A stretch of DNA of 49,077 bases from Basidiobolus meristosporus CBS 931.73 (lineage: Eukaryota; Fungi; Basidiobolomycota), in assembly GCA_002104905.1 (NCBI GenBank), contig MCFE01000660.1, forward strand, positions 1 to 49,077, in the 5' to 3' direction. Positions 6,218 through 49,077 of the stretch are shown here, one piece after another. Position 1 is the stretch's first letter. Each line of letters begins with the position of its first letter. A program made the translations under genes and the position numbers. Below the pieces are notes generated by a model. The model saw nothing but the letters and a program-made list of their open reading frames with translations. It did not search any database and had not been told where the DNA came from.

Positions 6218-6220
6218 ATT

Positions 6221-7917: not shown

Positions 7918-8276
7918 ATTAAAATTGATGGATGATTGTATGGAGGCGGTTTGATTCAATTCGGCGTGATCTGCGTTATTTATCTGATTTTTAACACATT
8001 ATGGTTAAATCTCCATCAATTGCCATGTATCCCATTGTTATGTTGCAAAAATCATCTGCAAACAATGCCTTGGTACTTTTATTGATGCTTTAATCATAGG
8101 TCTATAATCAAATAGGAAATCTGCAATTGATGTGATCTGATCCGTGTCAACGCAATCTGAGATGCACCATGCATAATATATGGAAAATTCAACAATCACT
8201 TTAGTTGTTATATATATTTCATATAAGACCAGGTTGATGCCAATATACTGCTGTATAAGTATCCAAATCCGTTGCT

Positions 8277-9144: not shown

Positions 9145-9867
9145 TGCGATTGCTTTGAATCGCTCACATTTGTAATGATCCCGACAACCCTTTTTTTTTG
9201 CGATCCAAATCAAGCCATCGCAAATCAGTGATCATCAAATTTTTGATATAAGTAATATCAAGGTCATCTCACATTTGAGAGAGAACCCCTATAAATAAAC
9301 ACCCTGCATATATATACGTCATCTGTAATACCAGTGCAGCTATTGGATCTGTTTTGCACCTACACAATCGCTTGCGTGCTAGCTATGACACCTTGTCCAA
9401 TCACTAGGATCAGGGATTTACTTGCTCAATGGGCAAAATGGCATATTTGATGGCGAATCAGGTAGCTTTTTCAGTAGTCAATGAGCCAATTGGGGGCTGC
9501 CAGCTTCAGGATACTTTTGGACCAATTAACCACTGAGATACCGTCCAATTGGAGTGAGGGTAACCAAAATGGTAAGTATCAGTGTAGTTTATAGTGTGAT
9601 ACACATTTATTTCCATTTACATTAAAGAAACATATCCAAATACCGGATTTTACCTGCCATTATAGCGGTATCCAATCACGCACATGATGCAAAGATTACG
9701 AGTTGGCGCAATCATCCGCGCCAACCTCAAAGTGTCAGATTGTGCCATAGTGTGCAAGATCTTCCAAGAACAATCCTGCCTTCTGGTAGCTATAATATTG
9801 CGCCCAATTGTTCTTTGCGACCGTGGATTGCGCCGCGCGCCCTGGCACGGTACAATGGAACAAGTCT

Positions 9868-10602
9868 AAAGCATTGGGAGTAATGCATGGATATTGTAGG
9901 AATATTTATCCAGGAGCAGATCACCAATGCCAGCTTGACACATCTACAGCTTTTGTGCAAAGTGTTTGTGATGGGAGATGAGCTGTACCACAAGCATAAA
10001 GCTGAATGTATAGATCTCAGCTGCTACTGTATACATTTGCTACTCCATCTTGCCTGATGTGTTGAGAATATTGGACCTTGCTTCACCTTTTGGGAGTTCT
10101 ATATGGAGCACATGTGTGGGGAGATAGTAAGACAAGTCAAGTCACAGGTACTCCCATATCCCAATCTCATCAAGAATATTACATTCAAGTCTGTGAAGGA
10201 TATGTTGAGTTGGCACATAGAGGACAGGCATGAAAAGCTGGGAAACACTGAGGACAGATGTGGACATTGAGACCCCTATGCCCATGGCTTTAAGAAGCTA
10301 AGCAGCCCCAATGTGTGGGTAATCAGTTAAGTAATGCAAAGTTGAGTTGCATGCAACAAGCAACTAACTCTTAGTAGGAAGACTCTACTAAAGTATGTCA
10401 GGTTTCTCTTTACCACAAGGAGATTTCTACACCATTCAGTACATAATTTAAACAAACAAGAGCCAGAGCACACCTATAAGGGGGAATAGAATTAAGCAGA
10501 GAGAAGGAATATATTGGCTAAATACCAAAAAGCTCTTTGCAGATAATCAGGAGGTATTCATGGCAGAAGTGGCAGCAACCAAGCATACGTTTGCAAGATA
10601 TA
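9868..10602 (+). pseudogene. CACTA transposase remnant, 3' part (continuation of 4050-5599)
   Basis: aaagcattgggagtaatgcatggatattgtaggaatatttatcc resumes the host ~40 bp after the point broken at 5599 (compared with 37190-37280). Contains the HL...GP...W.F.ME..CG region. Confidence 0.7.
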
Positions 10603-11499: not shown

Positions 11500-13870
11500 T
11501 ACAAAAAAGTTTTGCTTTAGTCTAGTTGATGGCAGGCTGGTGTGACTATGAGTTTAAGCAGATAGGTTTTGAGGGTAGCAAAACTACACTTTTCAGCATT
11601 GAGAATCAGTCCAGCAGCTGTTGATCTGTTGATTACATTAGTGACATGGGTGGCATGATCATCATGGTTTGTAGAAAATATGAATACTTCATAAACAGAT
11701 ATCAATGCATATGGCACATTCTGGAGTACTATTATCAAAACTCTCTGGAACTTCCCAGTATATGTCTTTGGGCCAAAGGGAGCTCCCTGAAACATTCAAT
11801 GCATATTATTCCACATATGGGCAGTCTTACACTGATAATCTGGATGGATCTGTTATTGGTGATATGTACCATAAAGTCCAACTTGGAGAATAATTTTGCT
11901 CCTGATGATGAGGAGAAGATATCCTGGATTCTTGGGATTGAGAACTAGTCATCTTGGAGAAGCTTACTCAGGTGTCTGGGGTCCAAATAGGGCCACTTAA
12001 GAGTTAGATTTCCATCAATGCCCTTTTTAGGTGCAAGCATCAAAGGGCTGTTCAGTGTTGTGCTGACAGGGGCTTGAGTTATAATATCATTGTCAGCCAG
12101 CCTTTTGACTATTTTATCAGCTAAGTATTGACATGAATGTGGAATTGGGTATTGTCTCCTCCATGTTGAATCACCAGGTGGGTATTCTAACATAACAATG
12201 GTTGCTGGGATAGTGCAGAAGCTGTTCCTTGGAATAGCTTAGTTTCTTTCTATGGCCAGTTGAATATCCAATTTGACTGATTGAGAATATGCTTCAAAAG
12301 TTGGTGCTGACTCTTCTTTTTTGCATTGGAGTGAGATAATATCTGGAATGTGCTCCATTGTGGGTGACTGGGATTTAGGATTTTGGGATAGGGAACTAGT
12401 AGTCTGCCTATATGAAAGCCATGATTAGTAAAGGTGACTAGACCAGTGACTATGTGAGGTCCATCTACAATGTCAATAACTTCTATTTAATGGTTTATAG
12501 TTATTGAACCACAATAGACTTGTTCCATGAGATAGTGCCACATTGAGCCATGAGTGCCAAATGATGCCATAGTGTGCCAAGGAGGCCAAGTAAGCCTATA
12601 CTTGGCCACAGAGTATGAAACATAGCTTTTCATTGTCATGTAAAGCAGCACATTTGTCTCACCCACCATGCCAGAGAAAATCCATTTTTTGATCTTTTTT
12701 TTTGAATCAATGTTGTGCAGGATGTGTATGAGCACAGAAGGACTGAAGACATGCTTCTGGTACTCAATACACATGGCGGTCTGAAACTAGCTCCTGTAGC
12801 ATGTATCATGTCATAAAAATGCATGGCACTATCTTGGTCCACTGGTACTATCTGGCTCTGCTGCTTCTTGGGATGTGTCCTAACTTGTTTGACTGCTTGG
12901 CAATGCCTTTGCATTCACTGGTATTATGACAACATCTTCCATAAAGCCCACAATTCTTGGTAGAAGCTGAATCTTCTTGGTCACACAACTGTTTTCTTTT
13001 CCAGTTGCTGCTGGATCTTGAGTGCTGTTGCCTCAAGTCTGGCTAACAGCCCCAGTCATGGTGGCTGCAAGTGTACATGATGCTGAGATCTTGTCATAAG
13101 TTCATTCTGGGTTTCATGCTTTGATGATAGTAAAATTGCTCTGTAGCTAGTGTGAGAAGCATGAAAGAAAATGAGCTGTAAGCAATGGAGTATCATTGTT
13201 AACTCTGGCTAATCTCATTTGATGTTGGAATCTATGACAGAAGTGTTAAATAGATTAATCCTTTTACATTTTAGTTTTCCATAGGTTGCAGCTGGTGTGC
13301 ATCTAAGAAATGACTACGCTTTCAAGAAACTCAGTATGATTCTTTATAACATTGGCTCCTTCAACACAAAAAGGGAAGTATCTTGGTACAACCAACAGGG
13401 TAGATCCAGAGGGGGATATAGTACTGGAGGATCCAAAGGCACAACTTCTTGGCGGCTGATGCAGAGTAAGGCTTGGCAGATTTTCAATGCTGTCACCTAC
13501 TTTTGCAACATTCTCCTGAGCTTTGATTAATCTAATCTCATCTTGGTAACTGTATACAACTTTAAGGAATTCATCTCTGCAATGAATGACAGAACCTGTC
13601 TTGGCTAGCTTTGTGTGCTCAATCATCAAGATGTTTCTTTCAAGCTGTGCAGTCAACTCTTTCTGATTTTGTTGGGCTTCTTCAAACATGGAAAGATTTG
13701 AATTGCATGCTGAGCACATCTTACAAAATGGTTGAATGTACAGGATCTCAACAAAAAAAATGTTGTTTCCAAGAGAAATGTGTAGCAATGCTCTTATATA
13801 GTTTAGCTGAACCTTAGTGACACCTTGGTACAGAATTTTTGAATTCTCACCAAGTGGCAGAAACATTAGC
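11500..13870 (-). mobile_element. Decayed Ty3/Gypsy family C (gag with Cys/His knuckle, RT), interrupted by half-MITE
   Basis: RT pieces WRRQYPIP...NSPLMLAPKK...LDPRHL and FQGAPFGPK..GKFQR..HATHVTNVI..LILNAEKCSF. Knuckle-like CGLYGRCCHNTSEC near 12900-12960. Gag assignment of ORF 13303-13866 is inferred from position. Confidence 0.65.
12516..12856. mobile_element. Foldback MITE copy 3, left arm only
   Basis: Starts agacttgttcc after aat. Ends at ggtactatctggc, a few nt before the arm/spacer boundary. Confidence 0.85.
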
Positions 13871-14229: not shown

Positions 14230-14430
14230 AATTGGATAGATCTGGGATGACTAATCCCTTGGAAAAGCATAGCATGTGCATTGATCAGGTGTGAGAGCTA
14301 AAAGCAGATTTGCAGAGGTGATAAATAAGCCATAAGTGGGATTAGTTATCTTTGGGTTAGTGAAAAATATTTAGGGCACTAGATTTTCTAGTAGAGTAAA
14401 AATTGTAAGTTTTAAATGGTGATGCACATC
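14230..14430. repeat. Unassigned dispersed repeat, also at ~33720-33910
   Basis: Both places share gataaataagccataa..ggattagt...ttagggcactagatttt. Confidence 0.5.
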
Positions 14431-14640
14431 ACCACTTTTATGGAAGGAGCTTGTGATGAGATTTGAGCTGCTATACTACAAGCATAAAGCTGAACACATA
14501 GATCTCTGCTGCTACTGTATCCATTCTTTACTCTGTTTTGCTTTGTGTGCAGAGAATATGGGGCTTTGCTTGACCTTTTGAGATCTTCCTATGCAGCCAA
14601 TATCACACAGAATTGCTATAAAGTTGAGGAGATAGATGTT
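14430..14640 (+). pseudogene. CACTA transposase fragment
   Basis: caagcataaagctgaacacatagatctctgctgctactgt matches 9990-10040 and 37360-37400. Confidence 0.6.
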
Positions 14641-15599: not shown

Positions 15600-18040
15600 C
15601 CAATTTCTTCAATACTCTTAAAACACATTACAGCTTTATGTCATTGTTGATTTACTGGCTCCCATATATTTTGGCCTTCAGCTGGCACAGCAAAGTCCAG
15701 CACCTCATTGGCCAGTCTTTACAATAATACCTTTCAATGTTCATGTGTACTTTCTTCTGCACTGCTCTTCCAGGAGTGCTGCAACCTCTGTGTTTACCTA
15801 CTGATGCTCCAAACTCCACTGTAGGGATTGTGATAGACTTTTGAGCTTTGAAAGTTGTTACTTTGCTCATCAGCAGGATCCCCACTGTGTTGGCAAAGAG
15901 GGATATGGAGGCAGTGGTAGACAAATTGCCTTTCTGCAATATGACATAGTGCACTGGAGTGTAGCTCAACTGACTGCACTTCCTGCTTTGAAGAAAGTCG
16001 CTGCTTTCTTGTTGGTAACTCTTCTGAGCTGTCATGGGACTCAACCTGAATAGGGCAAACAGTGTTAATTGGGAGGAACTGCAGCTTTTTTCTCTACTTG
16101 TCTGTTTTGGGCTTAGGTAGACTTTTCCCTCATCAACTTTACCTTATTCACTACAAAGTTTTTCACTGATCCTTTGGGTGTGTGCTTCCTGTATATAACA
16201 ACCTCTTAGCCTTTGTGAATGTGGCACTGGTACATTTCTCTTTGCCTACTTTTCCCTTGCTGGTACTATCCTGGCAACTTGGCTGATAGTTTTAGACTTT
16301 CAGCTCTGCTTGTGACAGGCTTATGGGAGAGCTACAGGTTTTTGATGCTGTTGGGACTTTGACTGCTACTGTAACTCAGTGCTTGTTGCATTAAACCAAG
16401 TTTTCTCTTTGATAAGTGCTCTACTAATACATCTGTTTTTTCCTGCTTGTCTCTTACTGACACTTACTTGGCAACCTAACATTTGTTTTTCTTTGGTTTT
16501 GAACTTTCAACTTTGGCTATTATAGGTATCTGAGAAAACTGCAGGGTTTTTGCATCTTCAGGTTCTACAGTGCCACTTTCACTAGGTACTTTTTGTATTG
16601 AGCTACCTTTTTTTCTTGATAAGTGATGCAGCTTTTCTGCCTGCTTGTCCCTTATTGAAACTCTTCTGACTCCCAGAAATTTCTTGGCCACATATTTGGC
16701 GCTTTTGGCCCTACTTGTGACAAGCTCCTGAGGAAGCTGCTAGTTTTAGCTCTGGCACCCTTGCTCTTCTGCCTGTGATTATTTCTGTCATTCTGCAGAC
16801 ACATTCTTAGCATACCAATTCTGGCCCAAAGTCAATTTGCTTACTTTAATTTAGGATAACACTGAAAGCACAGGTCAAGCAATTCACTTAGCTTTGAGTT
16901 GCTGAAGATCTCATAGTATACCTGCCTTGAGGTGATGCCATCCTTGACTTCAAACAGCCACTTAAGTGTCAACTCACCCTGCATCTTTGCACTCTATAGA
17001 CTTGTTCCATTGGATAGTGCCACATTGAGCCATGAGTGCCAAATGATGCCGTAGTGTGCCAGAGAGGCCAAGTGAGCCTATACTTGGCCACAGAGTGTGA
17101 AACATAGATCTGCATCTTCATGCAAAGCATCCCCTGTGTTTCACCTATGATGCAGGAGAAAATCCATTTTTTGATGTTTTTTTGTGGATCAATATTGTGC
17201 AGGATCTGCAAGAGCACAGGAGAACTGAAGATATGCATCTGGTACTCAATACCCATGGCACTCTGAATCTAGCTTCTGTAGCTTGTATAATGTCACAAAA
17301 ATGCATGGCACTATCTTGGTCCACTGGTACTATCTGGCAATATAAGTGCTTTGTATAGATCTTACTTTAGGGCTAATATTTAAATATAGTGCCAGATAGT
17401 ACCAGTGGACCAAGATAGTGCCATGCATTTTTGTGACATGATACAAGCTACAGGAGCTAGATTTGGAGTGCCATGGGTATTGAGTACCAGATGCATATCT
17501 TCAATCCTTTAGTGCTCTTGCTCATCTTGCACAACATTGACCTAAAAAAAAAGGTCAAAAATGGATTTTCTCCATCACAATGAGTGAAACACAGGGGCTG
17601 CTTTGCATAAAGATGCAGATCTATGTTTCACACTCTATAGCCAAGTGTTGGCTCACTTGGCCTCACTGGCATGCTATGGTCTCACTTGACACTCATGGCT
17701 CAATGTGGCACTATCAAATGGAACAAGTCTTATGGCTTCATGGATCTTCAATGTCTTTGATCATCAGTTGTGGGTTGAATACCATAGTCTCTCCCTCCCA
17801 TTCTATTAGAGGCTTTTCTGAAGGCTGTATCTTCAGGCACTGTTGTTGTACTTCAATGACTATAGGGTGTTCCTCTGCTGCTGCTTTGGGAGGGGGCTGT
17901 GTTACTTCACACAGTCCATGCTTTCTGGGGTACTGGAGTAACAGAATCATACTGTAATACCACCATAAGAGACATATGACTATCTTTCCTAAGTGCTCTA
18001 CAGTTCTGTGGCTTGCTAAGCTCACTTGTGTCCAACACAC
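15600..18040 (-). pseudogene. CACTA-associated accessory gene remnant, interrupted by MITE copy 4
   Basis: QQCLKIQPSEKPLIEWEGETMVF matches QCPKIKSTEKPITEWEGYTVVF at ~41200-41280. 15650-16900 is the inverse of 41400-42310. Confidence 0.6.
16998..17730. mobile_element. Foldback MITE copy 4, complete (733 bp), TSD TAT
   Basis: tat|agacttgttcc...ggaacaagtct|tat; ~345-bp inverted arms. Confidence 0.93.
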
Positions 18041-22272: not shown

Positions 22273-23585
22273 GTTGTTTTTCCAGGGCAGTAGACAATCA
22301 CCAGGTCAAATTGCTGAATGTATTCACTCCATCTTGTCATTCTTCTAGAGAGTACCTTCTGAGTAAATATATACTTGAGGGAGGCATGATCAGTCTTCAC
22401 AGTGCATTTGACTCCTTCATTATAGCATCTCCATGTCTTCAAACAGTGTATTATAGCAAGCATCTCCTTCTCATGGACTGGATAGTTTTGTTCTGCTGAG
22501 TTCAGTTACTTGGATTCAAAGGCAACAGGGTAGTCCTTTCCCTTGTGTTCTTGGCTCAGCACTCCACCAATTGCATAATCTGAAGCATCTGTGCACAGAG
22601 TGAACTCTTTTCTGAAGTCTGGTATTCTTAAGCTTGGCAGCTTAGCAAGTTCACTCTTGAGCGTCTGGAAGGCAGTCTCACAAGCCATGTCCCACTTGTA
22701 GGTATTGTCTTTCTTGCGGATATCACTTAAAGGGGCCGCAATACTTGCAAACAACTTGACAAATCTCCGATAATAAGAAACCATTCCAAGGAATGATCTG
22801 AGCTCTGATATGCAATGGGGCTGTTTCAGATTTTTGATTACTTCCACCTTCTTTGGGTCTAAGGTTACTCCTGTGCTAGTCACTATGTGTTGCAGGTATT
22901 CAACGTGCTCCTTGAAGAATTCACACTTGGCTAGCTTGCCATATAGCTTGTTATCTCTTAGTTTCTTCAAGACCTTTTCAATGTGCACTACGTGATCCTC
23001 TTCTGTCTTGCTGTATACCAATATGTCATCCATGTAGATTATCACAAACTTGTCTAAGTACTCCTGAAAGACAGTCTGCATCAGCGTCATGAATGTTGCA
23101 GGGGCATTAGTGAGGTCAAAACTCATGACTAAGTACTTGTAATGCTCATATCTGGTCCTAAATGCTGTCTTAGGAATATCTTCTGGTTTCACCCTACTTT
23201 GGTTGTATTCTGACATGAGGTCAATCTTGCTGAAAATAGTGGCTCCATTAAGTTGGTCCAAAAGCTCATCAATCCAAGGTATGGGGTACTTATTCTTGAC
23301 AGTAACTGAGTTCAGGGCTCTGTAGTCAATGCACATCCTAAGTGTTCCATCCTTCTTTTTCACAAAAAGCACTGGTGCTCCCCAGGGTGACTTGCTGGGC
23401 CTGATGTATCCTTGCTCCAATAGCTGATCAATTTGTCTCTTCATTTCCTCCAATTCCAATGGACTCATTCTGTAAGGTGTCTTGCTCATTGGAGGGCTAT
23501 TTCCTGTGTCAATGGCATGATCCACATCTCTGACTGGTGGTAGGCTTACAAGCTCATCTGGGAACACGTCTGAATATTTCTTCAA
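22245..23585 (-). pseudogene. Ty3/Gypsy reverse transcriptase and RNase H
   Basis: [59 protein letters not shown]. Stop at 22506. Confidence 0.9.
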
Positions 23586-23686: not shown

Positions 23687-26485
23687 TCTTCAACTTGGAG
23701 CCCACAAAATCAACTTCAGTCTCAACAGCTAATGGGGACTCTCACATAATCAGCTATACTACTTGGCCAGTAAGAATGAAGATTAACAACTATGAAGAAT
23801 GCCTACAGGCCTATATATTTGAGAACTGCAAGTTTGACCTTGTATCTGGAAAAACCTGCCTTTTTATTGTAATCTATCAATCAGCTGGAGAACCCATGGT
23901 ACTCAGATCCAGAGGGAGAACAAGACCAATGAGCTATTACCCACCAAACTGGATCTCAACTTGGTTAATGCCAGTGTTTGTGAAACAAGTGAGCTCATCA
24001 GGTAACAGTTCTGTGGAGCCCTTAGAGAAGGTACCCAAATGTTCCTCATGATGGTACTCCAGCATCCCAGAAAGTCTAGATCTTTAAGAAGGAATATTCA
24101 GACTTATTTTTGAAAGAACTTCTAAGCCTACCACCAGACAGAGATATGGATCATGCCATTGATACTGCAGATAGCAGCCAATGAGTAGACACCTTGCAGA
24201 ATGAGTCCCTTGGAGTTGGAAGAGACAAAGAGACAAATAGATCAATTATTGGAGCAAGATTATACCAGTTTGAGCAAGTCACCTTGAGGACACCTGTCCT
24301 TTTGTGTTAAAGAAGGATGAAGCACTTGAGATGTACATTGATAATAAAGCCCTCAACCCAGCTACTGTGAAGAATAAGTACCCCATACCATAGATTGATG
24401 AGCTTTTGGACCATCATGATGGAGTCACAATATTGAGCAAGATTGACCTCATGTCAGGATACAACCAGATTAGGGTGAGTCCAGAAGACCACCTTAAGAC
24501 AGAATACATGACCAGATATGAACACTAGATGTACTTAGTCATTAGCTTAAGTCTGACCAATGCCCCAGCAACATTCATGAACTTGATGCAAACAGTCTTC
24601 CAGGAGTGCTTAGACAGGTCTGTGGTAATCTTCCTAGATGACATATAGATATACAGCAAGATAGAAGAGGAAAATGTGGTGCACATTGAAAAGGTCTTAA
24701 AGTTGCTAAGAGAGAACATGCTGTGTGGCAAGCTAGCCAAGCGTGGATTCTTGAAGAAACATGCTGAATACCTGGGACACATAGTGACTAGCACAGGAGT
24801 GACCTTAGACCCAAAGAAGGATGAAGTTATCAAGAATCTGAAGCAGCCCCATAGCATATCTGATCTCAGATCATTCCTTGGAATGGTTATTGTTATCAGA
24901 TATGTGTCAAGTCCTTTGCAAGTAGTCCCACCCCTGTAACTGATTTTTGCAAGAAAGACAACACCAGGAAGTGGGACATAACCTGTGAGACTGCCTGTCA
25001 GATGCTCAAGAATGAACTTGCTAAGCTGCCAAGCTTAAGAATCCCCAACTTCCAAAAAGAGTTTACTCTGTGCACAGATGCTTCAGACCATGCAAATGCT
25101 GGAGTACTTAGCCAAGAACACAAGGGAAAGAACTACCCAGTTACTTTTAAGTTTTAGAAACTAAACTCAGCAGAACAGAACTATCTAGTGCATGAGAAGG
25201 AGACACTAGCCATAATCTACTGCCTAAAGACCTGGAGATGCCATGTTGAAGGAGTAAGGCACTGTGAAGACTGATCATGCCTCACTCAAGTAAATATTTA
25301 CTTATGATACTGTTCAGAAGAATGACACCATGAAGGGCTGAATTCAGCAAATTGACTTGGAGATTGTCTATTGCCCTAGGAAGAAAAACACAGGTGCTGG
25401 TGCTTTATCAAGACAAGTACAAGTTGCACAACTCAACCTGGTGCATGAATTGAATTGGCTAAGCTAGTATCTAAAGTACTTGGAGGACCAAGCCATTCTT
25501 AATGAGGTGAATGAAGAGATCAAGATGCTAATCTGGAATGAAGCCAGCAAATTTGGAGTAAAGGTTGAAAAACTCCATTAAATTGTCAATGGAAGCCCCA
25601 TTTACTATTGCCCTTATGTTACCTGCCTGGATTTAATATGTTAGCAACACAATGGATATGGGCATCTTGGAATTGAAGGGACCTGTAGCCCTGTGAAAGC
25701 TAGATCATGGTGGCACAGAATGAAACAAGATACTGAGAAGCTGGTGAAAGCATGCCCAAATTGCTAAATCAACCAAGGTTAACCACAGAGAATTGCTGAA
25801 CTCTTTCCCTTGGAGCCTGTGAGACCATTTGAGAGATTGGGAATTGACACTGATGGAAGACTGCCAACCACCATGAAACGCAACCATCAATCCTAGTAGC
25901 ATTTGACCATGCCACTAAATTGCCAGTTGCTAAAGTGGTACATGTAGCCAGTGAACAAGAAGTTGAAAGTATCATCTACCAAGAGAGCCTTATGAAGTTT
26001 GCATGCCCTGTAGAGATTTTATCCAATAGAAGGGCAAATTTGGTGGCAAAGATATTGGAAGCTCACCTGGAAATGCTGTAGATTAGATGCTCAAAAATCT
26101 CAGCATATTACCCTAGATCTAATGGAGTCACCAAGTGGCTTAATGGATTAAATGAAAAAAGCTGACAATTTAAAAGTGCTGAAAAGATGAAGTAGAGATT
26201 TGATAAGACAATAGCACCAGAATCATTGACAGATGGGAACTTTGTATTGTGGAGAAGCAACATTTGCAAGATGTTTCAGCTACAATGGACAGGACCATTC
26301 AAGATTATCACAGAATGTTCTTTTGCAACTCACCACTAGTGGACAATCCAGGAAATATTCACAAAGATTTAGTTCATAGAGACAGACTCAAGCTTGCAGG
26401 ATTTGCTGACAATACTGAACCATCAAGATTTTGGATTACAAGAGAAGATATTCTGGAGAACCCACTTAACTTTGGTAGCAACAAT
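23687..26485 (+). pseudogene. Heavily decayed family B pol (PR-RT-RH-INT), inverted relative to 20931-23686
   Basis: Nucleotide-level inverse homology throughout, for example kidlmsg, vtldpkk and hrdrlklagfadnt segments. Many stops and indels. Confidence 0.8.
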
Positions 26486-30539: not shown

Positions 30540-33500
30540 CAACTTTATGGCTTTTTAGTGTGATACTTGCAAAGCTGCCATATACCTTACATTGCAGTTA
30601 ACCAACAAATCTTGCCAACATATGTTTAGTTGCCACCACATTTGACATGGATACTCATGAATATCTTCAAAATACTTTTTGGTGCTTAGCCAATATATTC
30701 CCTCTCCCTGCTATATTCTAGCATCCCTTAAAATTGCACAGTAGCTCTTGGTTGAATGACTTTTGTACTGAATAGTGCCAATATCAGCCTTTACCTAAAA
30801 AACCTAGTATGCATTGGTATAGTTGTACTAATAAGAATTAAATGAAGCGCTAGCAACACATACAGCTTACCAATATATGCTCAGCTTCCATCACTTTTGC
30901 TGAGAATACCTTTTGCATAACTATAAAGTACTTATTGGTATATAAGCAATATGTTCTTTTTCTCTCTTATAGTCCAGTCCCCATAAGAAGTATGCCCTGG
31001 CTCTTGTTTGTGTAAATTCCATTTGAATAGTGTAGAAGCTGGCTGGTGACCTGGAGAAACCCAGTATAATCAGGTAAAGTTGTCCTAATGAGAAGTAGTT
31101 GCCTGTTGACCACAACTTGACTATGCTGTACTTAACAGATCACCCATGCATTGGTGCCACTTTGCTTCTTGGACACAGGTGTCTCCATGTACACATTGCT
31201 CCTCAGTATTATCCAACTCTTATTTGCAGTCCTGCATGTGCCTACTGATCAAATCCAAGATAGATTTGAATTTTATATTCTTGATGATATTAAAATATGT
31301 TTGTACTTGTAACTTGACTTGTTTTCTTATATTCCCACAAATCTGCACCATAGGATACCTGAAAAAGGTGAAGCAAGGTCCAACATTCTCCACACACCAG
31401 GCAAGATTGAGTACACAATGTCAGCAACAGTGGTAGAGCTCAACATGTGCAGCTCTATACCTGTAATGAAGCTTCTAAAATCCTGTCACCAACCCCTTGC
31501 ATAATAGCTGTAGAGGCATTTAGTAGATGTTGGTCATCAGCTTCTCGATAAGTACTTCTACAAGGTCAACATATGACTTCTGATACTTTTAATGTACTCA
31601 AGATAAAAATTGCATCAGAAGGCCAATTAAATAGATAAATTACCCAATTCTCCAGCCCATTCATTTGCATTTTTGTAAATGTCCTTATATAATAATTGGA
31701 GATTGCAAAACATACTTTGGAGTTGGATATTCTCAAATATCTTGCCAATTATATAGAATTTTACTAGTATATCAAGGGGCCCATATAGACTGAAGTGCCC
31801 CATGTACAACCTGGTAATAAAAACAGGGATTTTATTGAAGAGTGAATCGATCACTCCCAGCAAAGAGCTTTTGCTCCAAGTGCACAATTTATTATAGATA
31901 TCTCTGGTCTTAATCAAATCCGTATTCTGGCCAATGACTAATAACTTGCCAGCTTTGCTGCCTTTACTAGAAGACTTGAGTAAATTATCTCTGCAAGAAT
32001 AAGATATTCCTGAAACTGATGTTTGGACCACAATGATGTATGTGATGTATGGAGCAGATCCCCTAGATCTCACACATGTTACTGCAATACTGTCTACTGT
32101 GCTCAGCAAAGCTGGCTATCATGCTGATGGCTGGACTATCTCCACTGCAGATAATAATAAGAATTTGGACAATATTGTTATCGACTAGTCTTCTACTAGA
32201 TAGCATACAAAATCCATCTATCAATGAGCACAAGTAGCTACTCAGGTTGCGCAGTCATTCAGGCCCCTATATCAGTGATACTGCAATTAGATTTCTGCTC
32301 TGGTACTCTAATATTGACACCAATTTAGGTCAATGAGAATCAGCAGCCAGCAAGATTTGCTGGCAGAGTACTTGTGCAGTGAGAATCAATCAACTTATAA
32401 GGTAATGGCATGATCCTACATATCTTCAAGGTATTGCTTTTCTAATTAGCTGATTGTAATGTTTGCTATCAAATATATTAGCAATGCTTGCACTTGATTT
32501 ACACTCAGTATAGTATTTTATAGATTCAGCCTTTTTGTTTTGCTGCATGAGCTTCTTGATACATAGTTTTACTGGAATATATTTGAGTTGTGAGCTTTGT
32601 TTTACCCCTGTGGTTGCATATTTCTGACAAGTTAGACACCCGCAATGTTGGCATATTTGGATATGAATGCCATTTACTGTTGGCACATACTGGTATCAGG
32701 GCGGTCTCTGGGTCATATATTGCCAGGTGCATGATAGTTTTCCATTTGTACTAAACACATGGTGAGTCATATCCAAGAATGATCTTGGCAAGAATTAGCA
32801 GGAAATCATCAATGCCCACACTGCCAAAATTGGTGGAGGTACACCACTTCTCTAGCCACAAGTTTGCATCATTCATATATAGATTAAATACTTGGCTCAC
32901 TTGGCTCACTTGGCTACTTAGAATATCCTTGGCATTTTTTCCACAGCTACTGTCTCACTACACATTGGAACATTGCCAGGCTTATCAAGGGTTCTCTGGC
33001 AACAGGAGACTGACTCATTATCTATCAGTGAGTCTTGATCTTCAGAGCTATCACTCTGTAGGCTATATGCAGAAGGTTAAGGTGAGCCTAAAGGCATCAC
33101 ATATTGACATGAATCAGTTTACATAAAATTATAAGTACAGCTGAGCATTGTTGCATGAGTATTAAATGGCAGGCAAAATATTGTTGGTACAGCAATGATT
33201 GATGAATGCTCAAATATGACTTGTGTGGCAAAGTACTGGCCATTTTCCTTGCAATACTACCTATACTATCTATGTGTCTCATGGCAGAGAGGCATGTTAC
33301 AATAACCATTTGGTTGTTTTCCTTCTTTTACAGTGTTGAATCAAAGAAGTCTTGTTCATGGGGCAAAGTGCTTAACACTCAATATTGCAATGCTATTATT
33401 TTCCTGTTCCCAGTACTCATGTGGCTTCAGACATTCTTACATTTGAGATATTATGACAATATGAATGTAAGATGCAATGATGATCCATTAGGGTAAACAT

Positions 33501-34289: not shown

Positions 34290-37200
34290 CCCAAGTGCCT
34301 TCTGCTTGGTCCTCTGGCAATTCTCTGCTTACAAATCCACATTACTCAATCATCTCCTATGTCTGTGTACCTTGATTGGCTGTTGCCTCTTTTCACACCC
34401 CTTATATCATGACTCATCTAGTATTCTTACATTTCATATGTACAAGTTGATTTATTTTTGTTGAAACTTCAGATGTACCTCAAATGCCAATTGCATTGCC
34501 CTGCACAAGTCCCTATACCCCGCTCCAACTTTAAGCCTAAGCCAATACTAAACAAGTAAATGCAGTAAAATCCACCATTCAGTAAGCATCTTTGCTGTAA
34601 TGCCCTTTTTCCATGACTTTAGTGGGCACCCTGCAGCTTTATGTCACCATTAACTTACTGGTTCCCATATATAGACATCCTACAGTCTCTTGAGTAGTTG
34701 CCCACTCTTCATCATTGTGCTCAATGGCTTTGCAAATCATCAGTGTCTTTTGATTTTTAGGATCAGACATGAATACCACACTCCCTGCCTTCTATGCTGT
34801 GATGGATTTTTCTGTGGGCTTTATCTTTGGAAACTGTAGTTGTGCTTCAATGACTGTGCAGCGTTCCTCTACTCTATCATTGGTGAACAGCTCATTTCTT
34901 GGCTGTGACATTGAGATACTTGAGTTCCCTCGTTGCAGCAAAGAATCTGTATTCTCTACCTAGGTTATTGATTGCTTTTTGTATATTATTGCTCATCCTG
35001 TTTTGATACTATTTCCTAATTTTCTGGCCCATCACTTCTATCCTTTCAGCCACTGCATCTTATTGCTCATTAGTGCCCTGATATGAGTTGACAGTATACT
35101 TGCTAAACTGGGTGGTGGTGATTTTGTGAAGGCCACTTGCCTGTCTTCAACCTGAATGCACAACTTTTGCTACATTCTCATCTGTCTGAACATTGTGGTC
35201 AGCTTATGGCTTGGCAGAGATTCTCATTTGTTTACTTAACCAAGAGCCTGAGGAGTCCACAGTATTACCTTTAGTAGGCACACAGTCAACATTTACTTTT
35301 TTGAATGTAGCCCTTCTGGTTACATTGAATGCAAAAGCAAGCTGTTGTATAGCCATTCTCCTGCTGCTTTGAACTGTGGGGTTGAGTTGGGAAGCAGAAG
35401 GCTTTGCTTTATTTTTTGGTGGCATACATATTTTAGTGACTTAAACTAAAGGAGAGAAATTGTTACAAAGTGTGTGTATGTGGTGCCACAGCTTTATTTA
35501 TAATGACTACAATGGCAGGTTGTCATTGAATCTTATGTCCATGCTGGTACAATGTCTTAAATACTAGACTCTCATAAATTCACGTGAGTATTGACCAAAA
35601 GTGATGTAATAGTATGATGCTGTTGATTGTCAAACTATTTGCCCCATAGCAAAGACTACTTTGATTTAGCAACATAAGTGAAGAGAAAAAAGAACATGTG
35701 GCTATTGTGACTAGCCTCTCAGCCACAAAGCACTCAGACAGCATAGAAAGTATCTGAAAGAACACAAACAGTGCTTTGCCACACAAGTCTTGTTTGACCA
35801 TTGATCAGTCACTACTGTAAAGCAATACCTTGTCAGCCACTTGATATTTGTATAATGGCACCCAGCTTACTTGTCACCTTGCACAAACTAAGCCAGGTGA
35901 GTATGTGACACCTATAGGCTCACCTCAGCCCTGGGAAAATAGCATGCAAAGTGAAAGCTCTGAAGACAAAAGGCTAACTGATAGATTGTGAGCCCCTGAA
36001 AGAGTGTGGTGGTTTCAATATGAAAGGAGACACCACCTGCAGAAGAAAATGCCAAGGACACCTTATGGAGCCAAGTGAGCCCTGTAATTCATCTACTGGC
36101 CAATGATGTGATGTTGAGGCCCAAAAGGTGGTGCATTTCAATAAACATCACTAATGGGTGCCTTGAGGAATTACTATTACTCTTGCCAAAACCTTTCTGG
36201 AAGCAACTTACTATGTACTCGGTACAAATAGGAAACTGTCATGCAAATAGCAATATATGGCCCTGTGATCATCCTGGTACTACCATGTATCAACTATTGC
36301 ATAGCATTCACATTAAAAAATGCCACCATTGTAGGGTGTCCAACTTGCCAGGAATCCACTACCATTAGAGAAGAATATTGCTCACTCCACAGAAAAATCA
36401 GTAATACCCCATTTGAAGAAATTCAAGCAGTCCAACAAATATTGTGAAGCTATAAAGAACTGCACTCCACCTGAATAAAGTGCAAATATTTCCAATATAA
36501 TTGATAACAAACATTACAAACAACTAAGAAGAAAGGGCTAATATGAATGTGTGTATTGCCATGCCTTTGCTGTGCAACTTGATGGATATTCATGAAACAA
36601 GTAATCTACCAGCAACTCCTACTGGCCACTGATTTTCAGCAATGTGAATCTGCTGTCTATCTTACAGTAGCAAAGCAGAAATCTAGGGCCTAAATCACCA
36701 TGCTTACTATACAGCAGCATACCACTGAATGGCCATGATATCAATGCACATATTACTATTTGTATTGGAGATGCACAGCTGTCCAAAAGATAGCCTGTAT
36801 TTCTGGGACAATGACTTGCATTGCTATTGAATGTGTGAGAATGTACAGAAGTTGGCATGTTGCTGCAGCAAGGTTGGCAAACTCTTAGCCATTGGCTAGA
36901 ATATCAAATTAACTGGAAACTGAGATACTTAAGATAAAGGAGATCAAATGGAGCAAAAGATGTCCACTGAGAGCAATGCATTTTTATTTCTACAATATCC
37001 CTATACTAATGACTAAGTTGTACAAAGGATAGTTGAGCTGAATGACCTATTCAAGAAACTAAAGAAATATGAAAGAATTGGCAATGTGCCACAAAGTATC
37101 TGCAACTAAAAGTATGTCTCACAGGCCCAGTTAATATTCACACCAATATGCGACAATACAAATGAAAGGACTGGATGAGCTAGATATGTATGTATTCATG

Positions 37201-37531
37201 TGACCTTCTGAAGCCATTTATACTAATAGTCCATTGGAAGCATTGAGAGCTATATGCTGACATTGTAGGAATATTTATGCAAAAGCAGATTGCTAATGCT
37301 AACTAAATACATCTACAGCTTTTATGAAAGGAGTTTGTGACAGGATTTGAGTGCTTTACTACCAGCATAAAGCTGCCCCAGTAGATCTCTGCCACCACTG
37401 TATTCATTTTCTACTCCATCTTGCTCAGTGTGCAGAAAATACTGGGCCTTGCTTCATCTTTTGGGAGCTTCCTATTGAGCTGATGTGAGAGAGAAAGGAA
37501 GACCAACCAAATTGCAGGCACCTCCATATCC
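34290..37531 (+). mobile_element. CACTA-like element: accessory gene on minus (~34620-35425) and transposase remnant on plus
   Basis: ORF 35204-35425 MPPKNKAK... is a homolog of 40617-40871. Transposase is colinear with 4050-5599 and 9868-10220. Confidence 0.68.
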
Positions 37532-37719
37532 TAGTCTAATCCAACTCATCACATCCATGATAGACTTGAAGGTAATATTCTTGCTGAGATTGGGATATGG
37601 TAGTTCCTGCAACTTGACTTGTCTTCCTATCTCCCCACACATTTGTTCCATAGGAAACTCCCAAAAGGTGAAGCAAGGCCCAATATTCTCCACACACTGT
37701 GCAAGATGGAGTAGAGAAT

Positions 37720-38453
37720 AGACTTGTTCCGTTGGATAGTGCCACATTGAGCCAAGAGTGCCAAATAGTGCCATAGTGTGCCTGAGAGTCATAGCAGACC
37801 TAAACTTGGCCACAAAGTGTGGCATATAGTTCTTCATATTCATGCAAAGCAGCCCCTGTGTTTCACCTACCTTGCTGGAGAAATTCAATTTTTTAACCTT
37901 TTGTTTGGGATCAAAATTGTGCATGACGTAAATGAGCACAGACAGACTGAAGATATGCATCTGGTACATAATACCCATGGCACTCTAAATCTAGCCCCAC
38001 AGGCTTGTAGCATGCCACAAAAATGCATGGCACTATCTTGCTCCACTGGTAGTATCTGGCACTATAAGTGCTTTGTATAGGTTCTACTTTAGGGCTAATA
38101 TTTAAATATAGTGCCAGATACTACCAGTGGAGCAAGATAGTGCCATGCATTTTTGTGGCATGCTACAAGCCTGTGGGGCTAGATTTAGAGTGCCATGGGT
38201 ATTATGTACCAGATGCATATCTTCAGTCTGTCTGTGCTCATTTACGTCATGCACAATTTTGATCCCAAAAAAAAGGTTAAAAAATTGATTTTCTCCCGCA
38301 CAGTAGGTGAAACACAGGGGCTGCTTTGCATGAATATGCAGAACTATATGTCACACTCTGTGGGCAAGTTTAGGTCTGCTATGACTCTCAGGCACACTAT
38401 GGCACTATTTGGCGCTCATGGCTCAATGTGGCACTATCCAACGGAACAAGTCT
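37720..38453. mobile_element. Foldback MITE copy 5, complete (734 bp), TSD AAT
   Basis: aat|agacttgttcc...ggaacaagtct|aat. Removing it restores the host, compared with the inverse of 37381-37440. Confidence 0.95.
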
Positions 38454-40616
38454 AATGCATACAGTAGTGGCAGAGATCTACAAGCTCAGCTCTATGTTTG
38501 TAGTATAGCTGCTCAAATCCCATCACAAGCTCCTGGCACAAAAGTTGTAGATGAGTCAAGTTGGCATTTGTGAACCACTTCTGGATAAATATTCTTAAAA
38601 TGTCCACATATGACTCCTAATGCTTCCAATGTACTCTTGGTAGGAATGGCTTCAGAATGCCACTTGAATAAATACATATTTGGTTGACCCAGTCTTTGCA
38701 TTTGTATTGTTGCATATGTGTATGAGTATTAATTGAAGCCTGGGAGAAGTACTTAGGGTAGCAGATACTCTGTAATATCTTGCCAATTCTTTCAAATTTC
38801 TCTGGTATCTCAAAGGGCTCATTCAGCTTGAAATGCCCCATGTACATCTTGGTCATCATTTTAGGGATATTGTTGAAAAGCAAATGCAATGCTCCTGGTG
38901 TAAAGCTTTTGCTCCAACAGATACCCGTTATCTTAAGTATCCCCAGATTCCAATTGATTACATATTCTGGCCAATGGCTTATAGCTTGCCAACCTTGCTG
39001 CAATTGCATGCTGACTTCTGTACATTTTCTCTGTGGGAAGATGATGCTCTCAGTGCTAGTACTTGGGTAACAATACTGTGTGTGAGTTATGAAGTAAACC
39101 CCATGGATCTCACACATTCAACAGCAATTCCATCCATTGTGCCCAGAAAAACCTGCTATATTGCTGATGGCTGGGGTATCTCAATACAGATAATAATATG
39201 TGCTTTTACATGATGGCCGTTTACTCTAATCTTTATGGAAAGCTTACAGAATTCATCCAGCAATAGATACAGGTAGCTATCAAGGTTGGTCAGTGATTTA
39301 TACCCAGATACCAGTGAGACTACCATCAGATTATTGCTCTGATACTGTAAGATGGGTGGCAGATTCAGATTGATGAAAATAAGTGACCAGCAGGATATGC
39401 TGGCAGAGTACTTGTTTAATGAAATTCCATCAAGTGCTAAGGCAAAGGCAAGGTCATACATACCTTCAAGGTAGCCCTAGCTTCTTAGCTTTTTGTAATG
39501 TTTGCCATCAAATATATTAGATATGTTTGCGCTTGATTGATACCAAGTGTGGTACTGTATAGCTTTGCAATATTTATTGGACTGCATAAGCTTCTTGAAA
39601 TGGGGTATTATCAGAATATATCTGGAGTGTGAACAATGTTTTTGCTCCGTGACAATAGGTTCCTGACAATTTAGACATGTTGCAATGGTAGCATTTTTGG
39701 GTGTGAATTCCATGCAACTGCTAATACATGCTGGAATCAGGACAGTCTCTGGATCATATGCTGCCAGCTGCATGGCAGTTGTCCACTTGTACCTTGCACA
39801 TAGTATGTTGCATCCCAGAATGATTTTGGCAAGAAGCAGTAGTAAATCCTCAAAGCCCCCATTACTGGTATTAGTGGAAAAGCGCCACTTGTCTGGCCCC
39901 AACATTACATTGTTCACTAGCAGATGGATTACTGGGCTCCCTTGGCTCCATAATCTATCCTTGGCATTTGTTTCAACTGGTGTTGTCTCACTGCATTTTG
40001 GGATCTGACTGGGTTCATATGTGGTGCTGTTGTTAGGGGCAATAGGCTCACAATCCATCAGTGAGCCTTCATTGTCAGAGCTATAACTCTGCATGCCATA
40101 TTCAGAAGGCTGAGGTGGGCCTAAACTCATCATAAACTCACCTGACTCAGTTTACAAATGGTGACAAAAATTGCTAGGTGCCAATACAGAGGTATCAACT
40201 GGCTGGCAAGATAATGTGGGTAAGGTAGTGACCAAAGAATGGTTGAATATGACTTGTGTGGCAAAACACTGGTTGTGATCCTTGTACTACTTCCTTTGTT
40301 GTCTGCATGCTTCATGGCTGAGAGGCTTGCTACTATAGCCACATGTCCTTTTCTCTCTTCTCTTACGGCATTGAATCAAAGTGGTCTTGACCATGGGGCA
40401 AACAGTTTAACCTTCAACAATATAATGCTATTATATCACTTTTTGGTCAAAACTCATGTGAATTTAAGACAGTCTAGTATTTAAGAAATTGCACCTACAT
40501 GAATGTAAGATTCAATGATGACCTACCATAGTAAGCTTTATAAATAAAGTTGTGGCACCACATATACATTTATATGTAACACTACTTCCCCTTTGGCTTG
40601 ACTCACTTCCACAAAT

Positions 40617-42969: not shown

Positions 42970-43680
42970 TAATCACTATTTGTACAGATATCCAATAATA
43001 CAAATGAACGGACTGAATGTACTGGATATGAATTCACTCAAGTGGCCTTCTGAGCCATTCTTTTAAGCGTACCTTAGAAGCATTTGAATTCATATGTAGA
43101 CATCATAGGACCTTATATTCAGAATTGGATCACCAATGAAAATCTGGCACAACCACAGCTTCCATGCTAGCAGCATGTGAAAGGACTTGAGCAGGAGATA
43201 GGATGACAAGTCAGGTCTCAGTTACTACCATATTCCAGTCCTATTAGGAATATTATCTTCAAGTCTGTCATTGATGTGGTGAGTTTATACATGGTGGATA
43301 GCCTGGCAGAGCTGGAAATTACTGAGAGCAGATAATAAGCCACCAAGCTTTATTGGGACATCATTTCCAAAGTATACAGGGCTTCTTCTAGTAACATGCC
43401 AATTACTACACCATTCAATACAAGACTCACACAAACCAGATGCAGAGCACACCCATAATGGGGACTAGAGTCCAGCAGGGAGAAGAAATATATTGGCCAA
43501 GTACTAAAAGGCTCTTTGCAAATATTCAGGAGATATTCATGGCCAAAGTGGTGGCAACTGAGCACATGTTTGAAAGATGTATATTCTGCTTGCAATATAA
43601 GGTATATGGGAACTTTGAGGATATCACACTGAAAAGCTGTATAGTTGAGGTGATACAAGTGTGTCACTTGCAGTAGGTGT
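42970..43680 (+). pseudogene. CACTA transposase 3' fragment
   Basis: caataatacaaatgaacggactg...aatattatcttcaagtctg matches 37150-37330 and 10170-10210, followed by the shared 3' segment. Confidence 0.55.
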
Positions 43681-45518: not shown

Positions 45519-45911
45519 CTCCTGACTTACCTGTGGATCCCTACCTTCTGCCCAAAGTTTGAAGAAAACTTGTAAAAGGAATACTCACCATAAGTATCAC
45601 CCATCATCTTTCCCTAGTCTTGTCCTATAAAGGCAAAGATACTTTATCTTTGTAAAACTATTGGTCAAAGCTGCATTCACTTTATTACCCTGCTGGTGGA
45701 GTTTACAGTTGTTACAGTATTGGAAGCTTTAGTACAATACTCTATCAAAGGACGTTGAAACCAGTACCTTCTGAAGTGACGCTAACTTATTTAAGTTGGG
45801 GATTGTGGCTCAATAGTTGTATTCTTGACATACTAGTGGCTTTACAGACCCACAACCTAGTTTAGTATATTCCAGTATGCCTTGCAAGTTCATCCGCCTT
45901 CCTCTGCTACC

Positions 45912-46840
45912 ATGTCCAACCTAGAGCTGAACTTTGCCCAGCTCATGGCTGCCTTTACCCAACTGCAGCAAGACCATGCAGACCTCAGAAACACTCTTGC
46001 TCAGTTCCAGAACCAAAGTGTCCAGCAAACTAGCCATGTCCCAGTCTACCAAGAACCCAAGTATACTCCTGCTACCAAGTTCAATGGCTCTCAGAATGAA
46101 TTCCGTGGCTTCATCAACATGGTGAAGAACAATTGTACACTCCAGCCCAACCAGTACCCAACTGACCAGGCCAAAGTTGGTTTCATCTCCAACCTGCTTA
46201 CTGGTACAGCTCTCAAGTGGTTCTCCCCATTAGTGGAGACCAACTCTCCCCTCCTCAGAGACTACCAAGCTTTTCTCACTGAAATGGAGCTAACATTTGG
46301 TAACCTTGACCAAGCCAGAACTGCTGCCAACAAGATCAAGACCCTCAAGCAAGGGAACAAACCAGCATCAGTCTACACCTCAGAATTCCAACAACTCTCC
46401 AGTGACCTCAGCTCCTGGGGTCAAGCAGCCTTGATTAGCCAATTCCAAGATGGCCTCAATGATGAAGTTTGTGATTTGCTACTAACACTCCCAGATCCAG
46501 ATACATTGGTTGAAGCTATGCACCAAGCAATCTGGTGTGAAAACAGACTATTCCAGAAGAAGCAAAAGAACTGTCAAAGACACATTCCTGTTGCAGTCCC
46601 AGCCCCTCCTGCTCCCCAAGTCACTCCAGAAGATCCCATGCAGATTGATAGTACCAAATACAACTATCAAAGAGTGAAAAGTCCAGACGTCAACAAGCCA
46701 ACCTCTGTCTATACTGTAGCCAACCAGGTCACTTTGCCAAGTCCTGCCCCAACAAGAAGTCCAGCTTCAAGCTGATGCAGTCCTCCAGTAACCAACCTGA
46801 TTCAGATCTGTCGGGAAACTCCAATGTCCAGTTGCACTGA
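45912..46840 (+). pseudogene. gag (capsid plus CX2CX4HX4C knuckle), one frameshift near 46660
   Basis: [64 protein letters not shown] at 46706-46747 is in a shifted frame. Confidence 0.85.
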
Positions 46841-46856
46841 CAGGCTTGCAACTGGA
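46813..46856 (+). promoter_or_regulatory. -1 ribosomal frameshift signal (G GGA AAC plus 10-bp stem)
   Basis: Heptamer 46813-46819 is phased to the knuckle frame. 7-nt spacer; tccagttgca (46827-46836) pairs with tgcaactgga (46847-46856). Confidence 0.7.
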
Positions 46857-48570
46857 CCCACCCATGAAAATCCAGCATATCCAGAATCTTCCTTTGCCAC
46901 AAAATCTATCCAGTCCTTGAGAATGCCTGTCAAAATCCAGATCCCTGACTCCAGTCCTGTCCCAGCCCTAGCCCTGATTGATTCCAGTGCTTCATCCTGT
47001 TTCATTGACCAAGCCTTTGTCCAGAAGCACTCTATTCCTGTTACCTTGAAATCCTGTCCTGTCCAAGTAGAAGTTATTGATGGAAAATCACTCTCCTCTG
47101 GTGCCATTACCCATGAAACATGCTTACTCCAGCTGTCCAGTATTGCCCACCAAGAAAGAATTGCCTTCAACATCATCAACTCACCACACTATCCTATTGT
47201 GCTTGGAAGCTCATGGTTGAGCTACCACAATCCAAGTATTGATTGGAAATCCAAGATCCTATCATTCACCAGATCCCACCAAGTCAACTCCATGAAATCT
47301 CCAGACCCTGATAACTGTGAAAAGACGGTTGCCAACAGTTCAACAGCCCAAGATACCTTGCCAGCTGAAGGAGCCCCCTCAGCAACTATACCAGCCAAGT
47401 ACCAAAAGTTTGCCCATGTCTTTGACAAGAAGAAAGCAGAACTCCTCCCTGACCATTGGCCTTATGACTGCCCTATTGACCTTGAAGATGAAAAAGTCCC
47501 TCCATTTGGCCCAATATATAACCTCTCCCAGCCGGAGTAGAAAAAACTCCATGGTTATATTCAAGAAAACCTCCAGAAGGGTTTTATTCAGCACTCCAAA
47601 TCACCTGCTGGAGCCCCAATCCTCTTTGTCAAGAAGAAGGATGGCACACTCAGAATGTGTGTGGACTACCATGCTTTGAATAAGATCACAGTCAAGAACT
47701 GCTACCCCCTGCCCCTGATCAGCACACTGTTGGATCAGCTATCTGCTGCCCAAGTCTTCACCAAGATTGACTTGAGAGGAGCTTACAATCTTGTCAGAAT
47801 CAAGCCCGGTGATGAATGGAAAACTGCCTTTTGCACATGATATGGTCACTTTGAGTACAAAGTAATGCCATTTGGCCTCACCAATGCCCCTGCTGTGTTT
47901 CAACACCTCATGAATGACATATTCCGTGAATACCTTGACCAGTTTGTGGTAATCTACCTTGATGATATTCTCATATACTCCAAGAGCCAAGATGAACATG
48001 ATGAACATGTCAAGAAAGCATTGAGAAAACTAGACTCTGCTGGTCTCTATGCCAAGCTAGAGAAGTGTAAATTTGACCAGAGAGAAGTGGAATTTCTTGG
48101 TTACCTCATCAGCCCTGAGGGAACAAGAATGGACCCAAAGAAAGTTGACTCAGTCCAATCCTGGAAAACTCCAAGCTCAGTCAAGGAAGTACAATCCTTC
48201 CTGGGATTTGCCAACTTCTATTGCAGGTTCATAGCCAACTACTCCAAGATAGCTACCCCTCTGACAAAGCTTACCCAGAAGAACACACCTTTTGCCTGGA
48301 ATGAGGAGCAATCCAGCTCATTCAACCAACTCAAGAAATCTTTCCTGAAGGCCCCTCTACTTGCCCACCCTGACCTTGAGAAGCAATTCATAGTGGAGAC
48401 TGATGCTTCTGATTTTGCCCTTGGTGCCATACTCTCCCAGTATGATGAGGACAATGTGTTGCACCCCATTGCATTCTACTCTTGCAAGTTTTCCCCTGCA
48501 GAGATCAACTATGATATCTATGATAAGGAGTTGCTTGCCATCATTGTAGCCTTTGAGCAATGGAGACACT
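46824..48570 (+). pseudogene. pol: protease, RT, RNase H (stops at 47538 and 47838)
   Basis: [67 protein letters not shown]. Confidence 0.9.
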
Positions 48571-49077
48571 AGACTTGTTCCGTTGGATAGTGCCACATTG
48601 AGCCATGAGTGCCAAATGATGCCATAGTGTGCCAGAGAGGTCAAGCGAGCTTATACTTGGCCACAGAGTGTGAAACATAGCTCTGCATCTTCATGTAAAG
48701 CAGCCCCTGTGTTTCACCCATTGTGCAGGAGAAAATCCATTTTTTGACCTTTTTTTGTGGATCAATGTAGCTCAGGATGTGTAAGAGCACAGGAGAACTG
48801 AAGATATGAATCTGTTACTCAATACCCATGGCACTCTGAATCTAGCTCCTGTAGCTTGTGTCATGTCACTAAGAAGAATGGCACTATCTTGGTCCACTGG
48901 TACTATCTGGCACTATATTATTTAAATATTAGCCCTAAAGTAAGATCTATACAAAGCGCTTATAGTGCCAGATAGTACCAGTGGACCAAGATAGTGCCAT
49001 TCTTCTTAGTGACATGATACAAGCTACAGGAGCTAGATTCAGAGTGCCATGGGTATTGAGTACCAGATGCATATCTT
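48571..49077. mobile_element. Foldback MITE copy 6, runs off window; spacer in opposite orientation
   Basis: act|agacttgttccgttgg interrupts EQWRH(Y). Spacer reads aaatattagccctaaagtaagatctatacaaagc, the inverse of the spacer in copy 4. Confidence 0.92.

Follow-up and report, generated by a model that had tools for sequence, protein, structure and literature searches.

The window analysed here, a stretch of 49,077 nucleotides from the fungus Basidiobolus meristosporus CBS 931.73 (contig MCFE01000660.1), is transposon-rich, has a G+C content of about 40% and carries coding relics of Ty3/Gypsy and PIF/Harbinger elements, long ORFs among them. It harbours six copies of a palindromic element, which together provide 11 arms and have different flanks. 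These copies were found by BLAST and by a profile search, the latter adding no further arm. Exact-pattern scans for further copies found nothing in metagenome contigs or in prokaryotic genome contigs, and the comparison with Rfam gave zero matches across the whole window.

The copy considered in most detail, copy 5 (37720-38453, about 734 bp), is non-coding and consists of two 347-nt arms around a 40-nt spacer. The left arm (37720-38066, + strand) starts with AGACTTGTTCC and pairs with the right arm (38107-38453, - strand), which terminates in GGAACAAGTCT. The non-palindromic spacer that separates them (38067-38106, + strand) corresponds to the loop of the hairpin and differs from the spacer of copy 4 at 3 of 40 positions. 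The element is bordered by a target-site duplication, AAT at 37717-37719 on the left and its partner AAT at 38454-38456 on the right. According to a computed fold, copy 5 as single-stranded DNA forms one hairpin of -424.8 kcal/mol (z = -62). Copy 5 is a true insertion, because its joined flanks align unbroken to a paralogous empty site, i.e. a copy of the host repeat (31241-32259, + strand) that is uninterrupted across the insertion point, located there at about 31418.

This insertion lies 156 nt from the centre of a member of a second, older palindromic repeat family (36837-39029), whose arms of about 725 nt are 72-84% alike. Further pieces of this family are found at 4966-5599, 9869-10213, 14427-14601, 31241-32259 and 42983-43285. 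The older family seems to be a preferred landing site, another of its copies hosting the block made of copy 1, copy 2 and a Harbinger element. An ORF of about 85 aa (86 aa for the longest) runs outward through the outer arm, both in the two arms of copy 5 (38195-38455 on the + strand and 37472-37978 on the - strand) and in copy 1 (5598-5855, - strand). Pfam gave no match to the 86-aa ORF inside the arm, the protein collection that was searched contained none of its relatives, and the outer-arm ORF is probably fortuitous.

Judging from its sequence, the element can be classified as a non-autonomous foldback MITE of the PIF/Harbinger transposon family. Its inverted termini, AGACTTGTTCC...GGAACAAGTCT, are accompanied by 3-bp target-site duplications that are not the canonical TWA (AAT/AAT for copy 5, TAT/TAT for copy 4). 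The assignment follows from the terminus GGAACAAGTCT (11-12 nt), which is found again at 9857-9867, where it is the right end of an element encoding a DDE_Tnp_4 transposase. The left end of this Harbinger element is copy 2. Its transposase ORF (7165-7683, - strand; DDE_Tnp_4, PIF/Harbinger, E = 6e-22) is that of a likely autonomous partner of the MITE, and a second DDE_Tnp_4 ORF is present at 298-999 (E about 1e-21). The search of the protein collection revealed one relative of the Harbinger transposase ORF, with 60% identity, on a 1.25-kb contig.

Copies 1 and 2 are arranged head to tail (5600-9867), and the junction between copy 2 and the Harbinger body reads ...CACTATAA/TTTCTACC. The second Harbinger copy, at the start of the window (1 to about 4900), displays the identical junction sequence, with arm-like sequence ahead of it. 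The left end of the autonomous element may therefore normally include the palindrome or a single arm of it, and could be the origin of the MITE. As the host repeat is nearly continuous across 5599/9869, the whole 4.3-kb block acts as a single insertion.

The five other copies differ in their completeness. Copy 1 (5600-6209, + strand) includes a full left arm, a 42-nt spacer and a right arm devoid of its outer 120 nt or so; its arms differ at 38 of 229 compared positions, and it is old and decayed. Copy 2 (6221-6938, + strand) has a perfect core (6441-6567 / 6608-6734), and the final 17 nt of its right arm are replaced by the Harbinger body, which reaches 9867. Copy 3 (12516-12859, + strand) is a half copy made of the left arm alone, stopping within about 4 nt of the border between arm and spacer. 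Unrelated sequence follows directly past the end of this arm (12516-12862), as expected from the breakage of a hairpin loop followed by end joining. Copy 4 (16998-17730, + strand) is complete, with its TAT/TAT duplication, and has a left/right asymmetry in common with copy 2; the inner 119 nt of its arms contain 5 mismatches, so that a perfect core is lacking. At copies 4 and 5, the arms show no over-copying into the neighbouring flank.

Copy 6 (48571-49077, - strand) is cut off by the end of the window, has a 57-nt perfect core and interrupts a Ty3/Gypsy pol ORF. The Ty3/Gypsy element (45882-48572) carries intact ORFs of considerable length for gag (297 aa), protease (238 aa) and RT/RNase H (235 aa), and its RNase H domain is severed exactly at the start of copy 6 (48570). 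Since its host retains such long ORFs, copy 6 is probably young, which suggests a fairly recent insertion of the MITE into a young retrotransposon. The orientation of its spacer is opposite to that of the other four spacers. The diagnostic sites of its single visible outer arm are equally divided (5 left-like versus 5 right-like), so that a flipped centre and an inverted insertion look alike. Elsewhere in the window, a 589-nt inverted repeat (22779-23367 / 24300-24888; arms 84% complementary and 932 nt apart) overlaps a Ty3/Gypsy reverse-transcriptase ORF (22506-23585); it probably arose by the inverted duplication of part of a retrotransposon.

An earlier note on this DNA had claimed that each copy possessing a centre carries variants that are absent from the other copies and nevertheless mirrored in its two arms. 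All the left arms were aligned with the reverse complements of all the right arms (11 arms from six copies), a variant being considered as private when it is absent from the five other copies in the window. The strings quoted for copies 1, 2, 5 and 6 are all present, and mirrored, in both arms of the copy concerned. They correspond in copy 5 to C and G in the ...CTTGCTCCACTGGTAGTATC... stretch, to CCCCACAGG and to TACATAATACC; in copy 6 to CTAAGAAGAATGG; in copy 2 to CAGGTGCTC; and in copy 1 to CCACTGGCACTATC and to two T's in GGTAC..TTAATC. Copy 5 has 23 window-private mirrored variants, 11 of them within 128 nt of the spacer and 12 beyond, where about one would be expected by chance coincidence. 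Copy 2 has 4, all in the inner zone, copy 6 has 4, clustered within 8 nt, and copy 1 has 3. The generalization to every centred copy does not extend to copy 4, for which the inner zone contains none. In copy 6, the cluster consists of four substitutions that change CAAAAATGCATGG into CTAAGAAGAATGG in both arms (about 48870-48877 and 49001-49008), 41-48 nt from the spacer; by analogy, this is the type of change that template switching would produce.

The arms of several copies are also perfectly complementary next to the spacer. The perfect run outward from the spacer reaches 163 nt in copy 5, 127 nt in copy 2, 57 nt in copy 6, 4 nt in copy 4 and 3 nt in copy 1. In copy 5, the core of the left arm (37904-38066, + strand) is the exact inverse of 38107-38269; it had been described as a perfect inverse of 160 nt (37907-38066), which is right as to perfection and 3 nt too short. 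The perfect stretch of about 120 bp announced for copy 2 is the 127-nt core. The arms of copy 5 are mismatched at 11 of 348 aligned positions, all of them outside the core and at least 164 nt from the spacer, so that a perfect core is associated with outer arms that are 4.5-5.2% divergent. The accumulation of mismatches towards the termini, noticed at first reading in copies 2 and 5, is statistically well supported. Indeed, all 45 mismatches of copy 2 lie beyond its 127-nt core (P = 1.7e-9 for all of them being so far out), and for copy 5 the probability that all mismatches lie at the observed distance from the spacer or beyond is 9.6e-4.

In four copies, mismatches are most numerous 150-200 nt from the spacer (15, 15, 13 and 5 mismatches per 50 nt), in a T-rich stretch prone to indels, and the ends of the tracts fall at or just inside this stretch. 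The older palindrome around copy 5 (centre near 37562, arms of about 725 nt) was used as a control. Its identity profile is flat (72-84%); therefore, palindromes in this assembly do not in general show the centre-out gradient. No signal of GC bias was found among the mirrored changes (12 W>S versus 9 S>W, P = 0.45), a result that neither favours nor rules out recombinational conversion.

The zones of the arms have had different histories. Over the inner 117 nt, the divergence between arms of the same copy is 0% for copy 2, 0% for copy 5, 2.6% for copy 6, 4.3% for copy 4 and 9.5% for copy 1; between copies, it is 5-20%. In the middle zone, C2a and C2b diverge by 18.1% and C4a and C4b by 19.1%, compared with 13.8% between C2a and C4a and 9.6% between C2b and C4b. 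Maximum-likelihood trees of the 11 arms of this one window, partitioned by zone, give the same picture. In the tree of the inner 128 nt, the arms are sisters in copy 2 (support 99), copy 5 (100) and copy 6 (98), those of copy 1 are paired at 86, and those of copy 4 are not paired. The outer 216 nt give a different tree, in which C2a is placed with C4a (85) and C2b with C4b (80) and only the arms of copy 5 are sisters. Such a conflict between inner and outer trees is what would be expected for a tract limited to the centre. The zone distances give no indication that the neighbouring arms of copies 1 and 2 have converted each other.

Copies 2 and 4 have a left/right difference in common at 10 sites, versus a single site with the opposite pattern. 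These sites mostly correspond to derived states of the left arm, 161-196 nt from the spacer, two or three being on the right arm. Since copies 2 and 4 are separate insertions with a common asymmetry, the outer arms of their source element were already unlike and were transmitted as such. The asymmetry of the outer arms thus survives transposition, and a jump does not regenerate the palindrome as a whole, contrary to one of the two origins of the symmetry put forward in the earlier note.

The left arm of copy 2 is a mosaic. It is of the left type at 10 sites located at least 157 nt from the spacer, has right-arm-derived states at 126 and 120 nt (as in C2b and C4b) and is identical to C2b over 127 nt. 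Such a mosaic is the mark of copying from the right arm to the left, over a tract that starts from the spacer and ends 128-157 nt out, the direction being deduced from only 2 derived sites. In the lineage of copy 2, the private unmirrored changes number 21 in 223 outer columns versus 1 in 128 inner columns, where about 12 would be expected; because of this deficit, the core of copy 2 can be considered as homogenised late in its lineage, the outer arm being spared. The other origin put forward earlier, the recopying of one arm from the other anchored at the centre, is borne out by the conflicting inner and outer trees and by the mosaic left arm of copy 2. Copy 5 looks like the product of an earlier event that affected whole arms and was followed by renewed divergence.

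Part of the symmetry is due to inheritance within subfamilies, since 20 of the 43 mirrored non-consensus variants of copy 5 are common to other copies, mainly as an outer-arm block found with C1a, and since C1a and copy 5 are on one side of a split supported at 91% in the tree. The sharing of symmetric variants by subfamilies, which the earlier note had named among the signs that the symmetry dates from founders only, is observed for these 20 variants but not for the 23 that are private to the window. Many of the variants of copy 5 described as private may themselves be subfamily markers. The outer arms of copy 5 carry 9 unmirrored private changes. If these are taken as the load accumulated after homogenisation, copying in place would be expected to leave about 2-3 mirrored inner variants, versus 11 seen, so that most of the mirrored variants of copy 5 would predate the last event. 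The copying would have taken place either in place after insertion or in the lineages of source elements, and six copies from one window would be compatible with both.

The most serious competitor of recopying between the arms, somewhat less probable than not on our assessment, is that the symmetry comes from founders only. All the copies would be fairly young insertions from different source elements that were already symmetrical, the mirrored variants would be subfamily markers and no change would have occurred after insertion. The outer-arm block common to copies 1 and 5, the 91% split and the 20 of 43 shared variants all fit this explanation, as do the intact target duplications of copies 4 and 5 and the probable youth of copy 6, inserted in a Ty3/Gypsy element with long ORFs. 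However, it still requires arm-to-arm copying, merely shifted to rare active source lineages, and it implies that the 21 private unmirrored outer changes of copy 2, beside a perfect 127-nt core, were all inherited from its source. Re-synthesis of the palindrome, or of its core alone, from one arm at every transposition, for example by snap-back of the excised element or by gap repair, is improbable. It would allow the inner mismatch values (0, 0, 2.6, 4.3 and 9.5%) to be read as the time since insertion, and perfect cores are indeed found in copies with intact ends. Nevertheless, its whole-arm form is refuted by the 10 versus 1 sites of asymmetry in copies 2 and 4 and by the grouping of outer arms by side, and no basis for its core-only form is known from the cut-and-paste transposition of DDE elements.

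Selection for a perfect stem, acting through compensatory substitutions because a hairpin core is needed for transposition or for the production of a hairpin RNA, appears more doubtful still. Divergence between copies is lowest in the inner zone (8-17% versus 14-28%), which bears AGTGCCA motifs of the terminal type; there are six of these motifs per arm, dispersed at the outer and inner ends, for about one expected in the whole 736-nt element. Selection in active lineages probably adds to the conservation of this zone. As the source of the symmetry, however, it is confronted with the 11 mirrored changes of copy 5 within 128 nt, with zero intermediates, and with the mirrored cluster of four substitutions in copy 6, both improbable as independent double hits; furthermore, selection does not act on the majority of copies in a MITE family, and Rfam gave no match. 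Least credible of all would be an artefact of assembly or polishing that transferred the bases of one arm to the other. Near-identical inverted arms can attract mis-mapped short reads, but the perfect zone adjoins the spacer, a unique sequence that gives reads their best anchorage, and any long read exceeds the element in length. In addition, the pattern is repeated in several copies with different tract lengths, and the neighbouring older palindrome is not homogenised.

We therefore favour, as the probable explanation, a repeated recopying of the loop-adjacent zone from arm to arm in lineages of this PIF/Harbinger foldback MITE. A single strand of the element would fold into one hairpin of about 347 bp with a 40-nt loop, and some 130-160 nt of each arm beside the loop would repeatedly be overwritten by the complement of the other arm. 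Any new mutation arising near the loop would then be either erased or mirrored. In the outer two thirds, by contrast, each arm would evolve on its own, and old left/right differences would persist. The most likely process that we infer is an intramolecular fold-back copying nucleated at the loop. With regard to its enzymology, template switching by a polymerase on a snapped-back nascent strand (quasi-palindrome correction) is one candidate, the others being short-tract gene conversion, heteroduplex repair between the arms and mismatch repair in an extruded hairpin. The interruption of the stem at the T-rich stretch 150-200 nt out would plausibly halt a hairpin-templated process. The process would be sporadic, since copy 4 has no homogenised core and the core of copy 1 is weak.

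The mechanism itself was regarded in the earlier note as the best candidate for something undescribed. This cannot be maintained, as the homogenisation of arms and the inversion of spacers are already published (PMC8604942, PMC1803023, PMC3723533). Template switching homogenises the arms of inverted repeats and inverts their spacers (PMC8604942). In this quasi-palindrome correction, according to the Ripley model, one arm is the template for its partner, and the products are perfect inverted repeats, multi-nucleotide changes in clusters and inverted spacers (PMC8604942). Copy 6 has a mirrored cluster of four substitutions and an oppositely oriented spacer, the latter equally compatible with an inverted insertion. 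However, Ripley-model events mostly concern short repeats, with tracts of a few to tens of bases, whereas the tracts reported here reach 127-163 nt or more and are known from sequence alone.

The Galileo and Foldback-type transposons of Drosophila also have long inverted arms, a short middle segment and mirrored copy-specific variants (PMC2775673). In GalileoN, the two TIRs of one copy share more than 99% identity, whereas those of different copies differ by about 7% (PMC2775673, Table 2); there are also chimeric copies, whose two TIRs are unlike (PMC2775673). In Tetris foldback elements, internal homogenisation is ascribed to conversion or unequal exchange (PMC4079207). Unlike the present family, which is PIF/Harbinger-like with 3-bp duplications, Galileo is a member of the P superfamily with 7-bp ones; a further difference is that homogenisation in the present family is confined to 130-160 nt beside the loop and to some copies. 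In addition, the arms of the Drosophila FB-type elements are tandem arrays of short subrepeats, unlike the present arms, which have dispersed AGTGCCA motifs and no tandem arrays.

Large palindromes are likewise kept alike by arm-to-arm conversion (PMC3723533, PMC1803023). In the human Y palindrome P6 and in inverted gene pairs of nematodes, as here, the two arms show concerted evolution, and conservation is stronger for the structure than for the sequence (PMC3723533, PMC1803023). These palindromes are gene-bearing fixed loci of kilobases to megabases with GC-biased conversion, whereas the present one is a mobile palindrome of 734 bp in which no GC bias was detected. Like the Tourist-like MITEs, the element is small and non-coding, duplicates 3 bp of its target and has termini in common with a DDE_Tnp_4 element. 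Typical Tourist MITEs, however, have TIRs of 10-30 bp and TWA duplications; the present element is wholly palindromic, with AAT and TAT. What is new in this family is the centre-limited tract found alongside an inherited outer asymmetry, the mechanism itself being already known.

A stronger version of the proposal, which we consider unlikely, is that every move of the element, or every replication of its locus, restores the perfect core from one arm, by a loop-nucleated snap-back whose reach of about 130-160 nt would be set by the single-stranded DNA available. Every insertion would then possess a self-correcting core, and the number of mismatches in the core would date the last event; this would be a new step in the biology of foldback MITEs derived from PIF/Harbinger elements. 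Under the favoured explanation, i.e. recopying between the arms in some lineages, the family is a clean, small-scale example of concerted evolution inside a mobile palindrome. The inheritance of outer-arm asymmetry through transposition excludes a regeneration of the whole palindrome for this foldback MITE family. Furthermore, the identity of the arms is a poor clock for the age of insertions in such elements, which matters for the dating of MITE bursts by TIR divergence.
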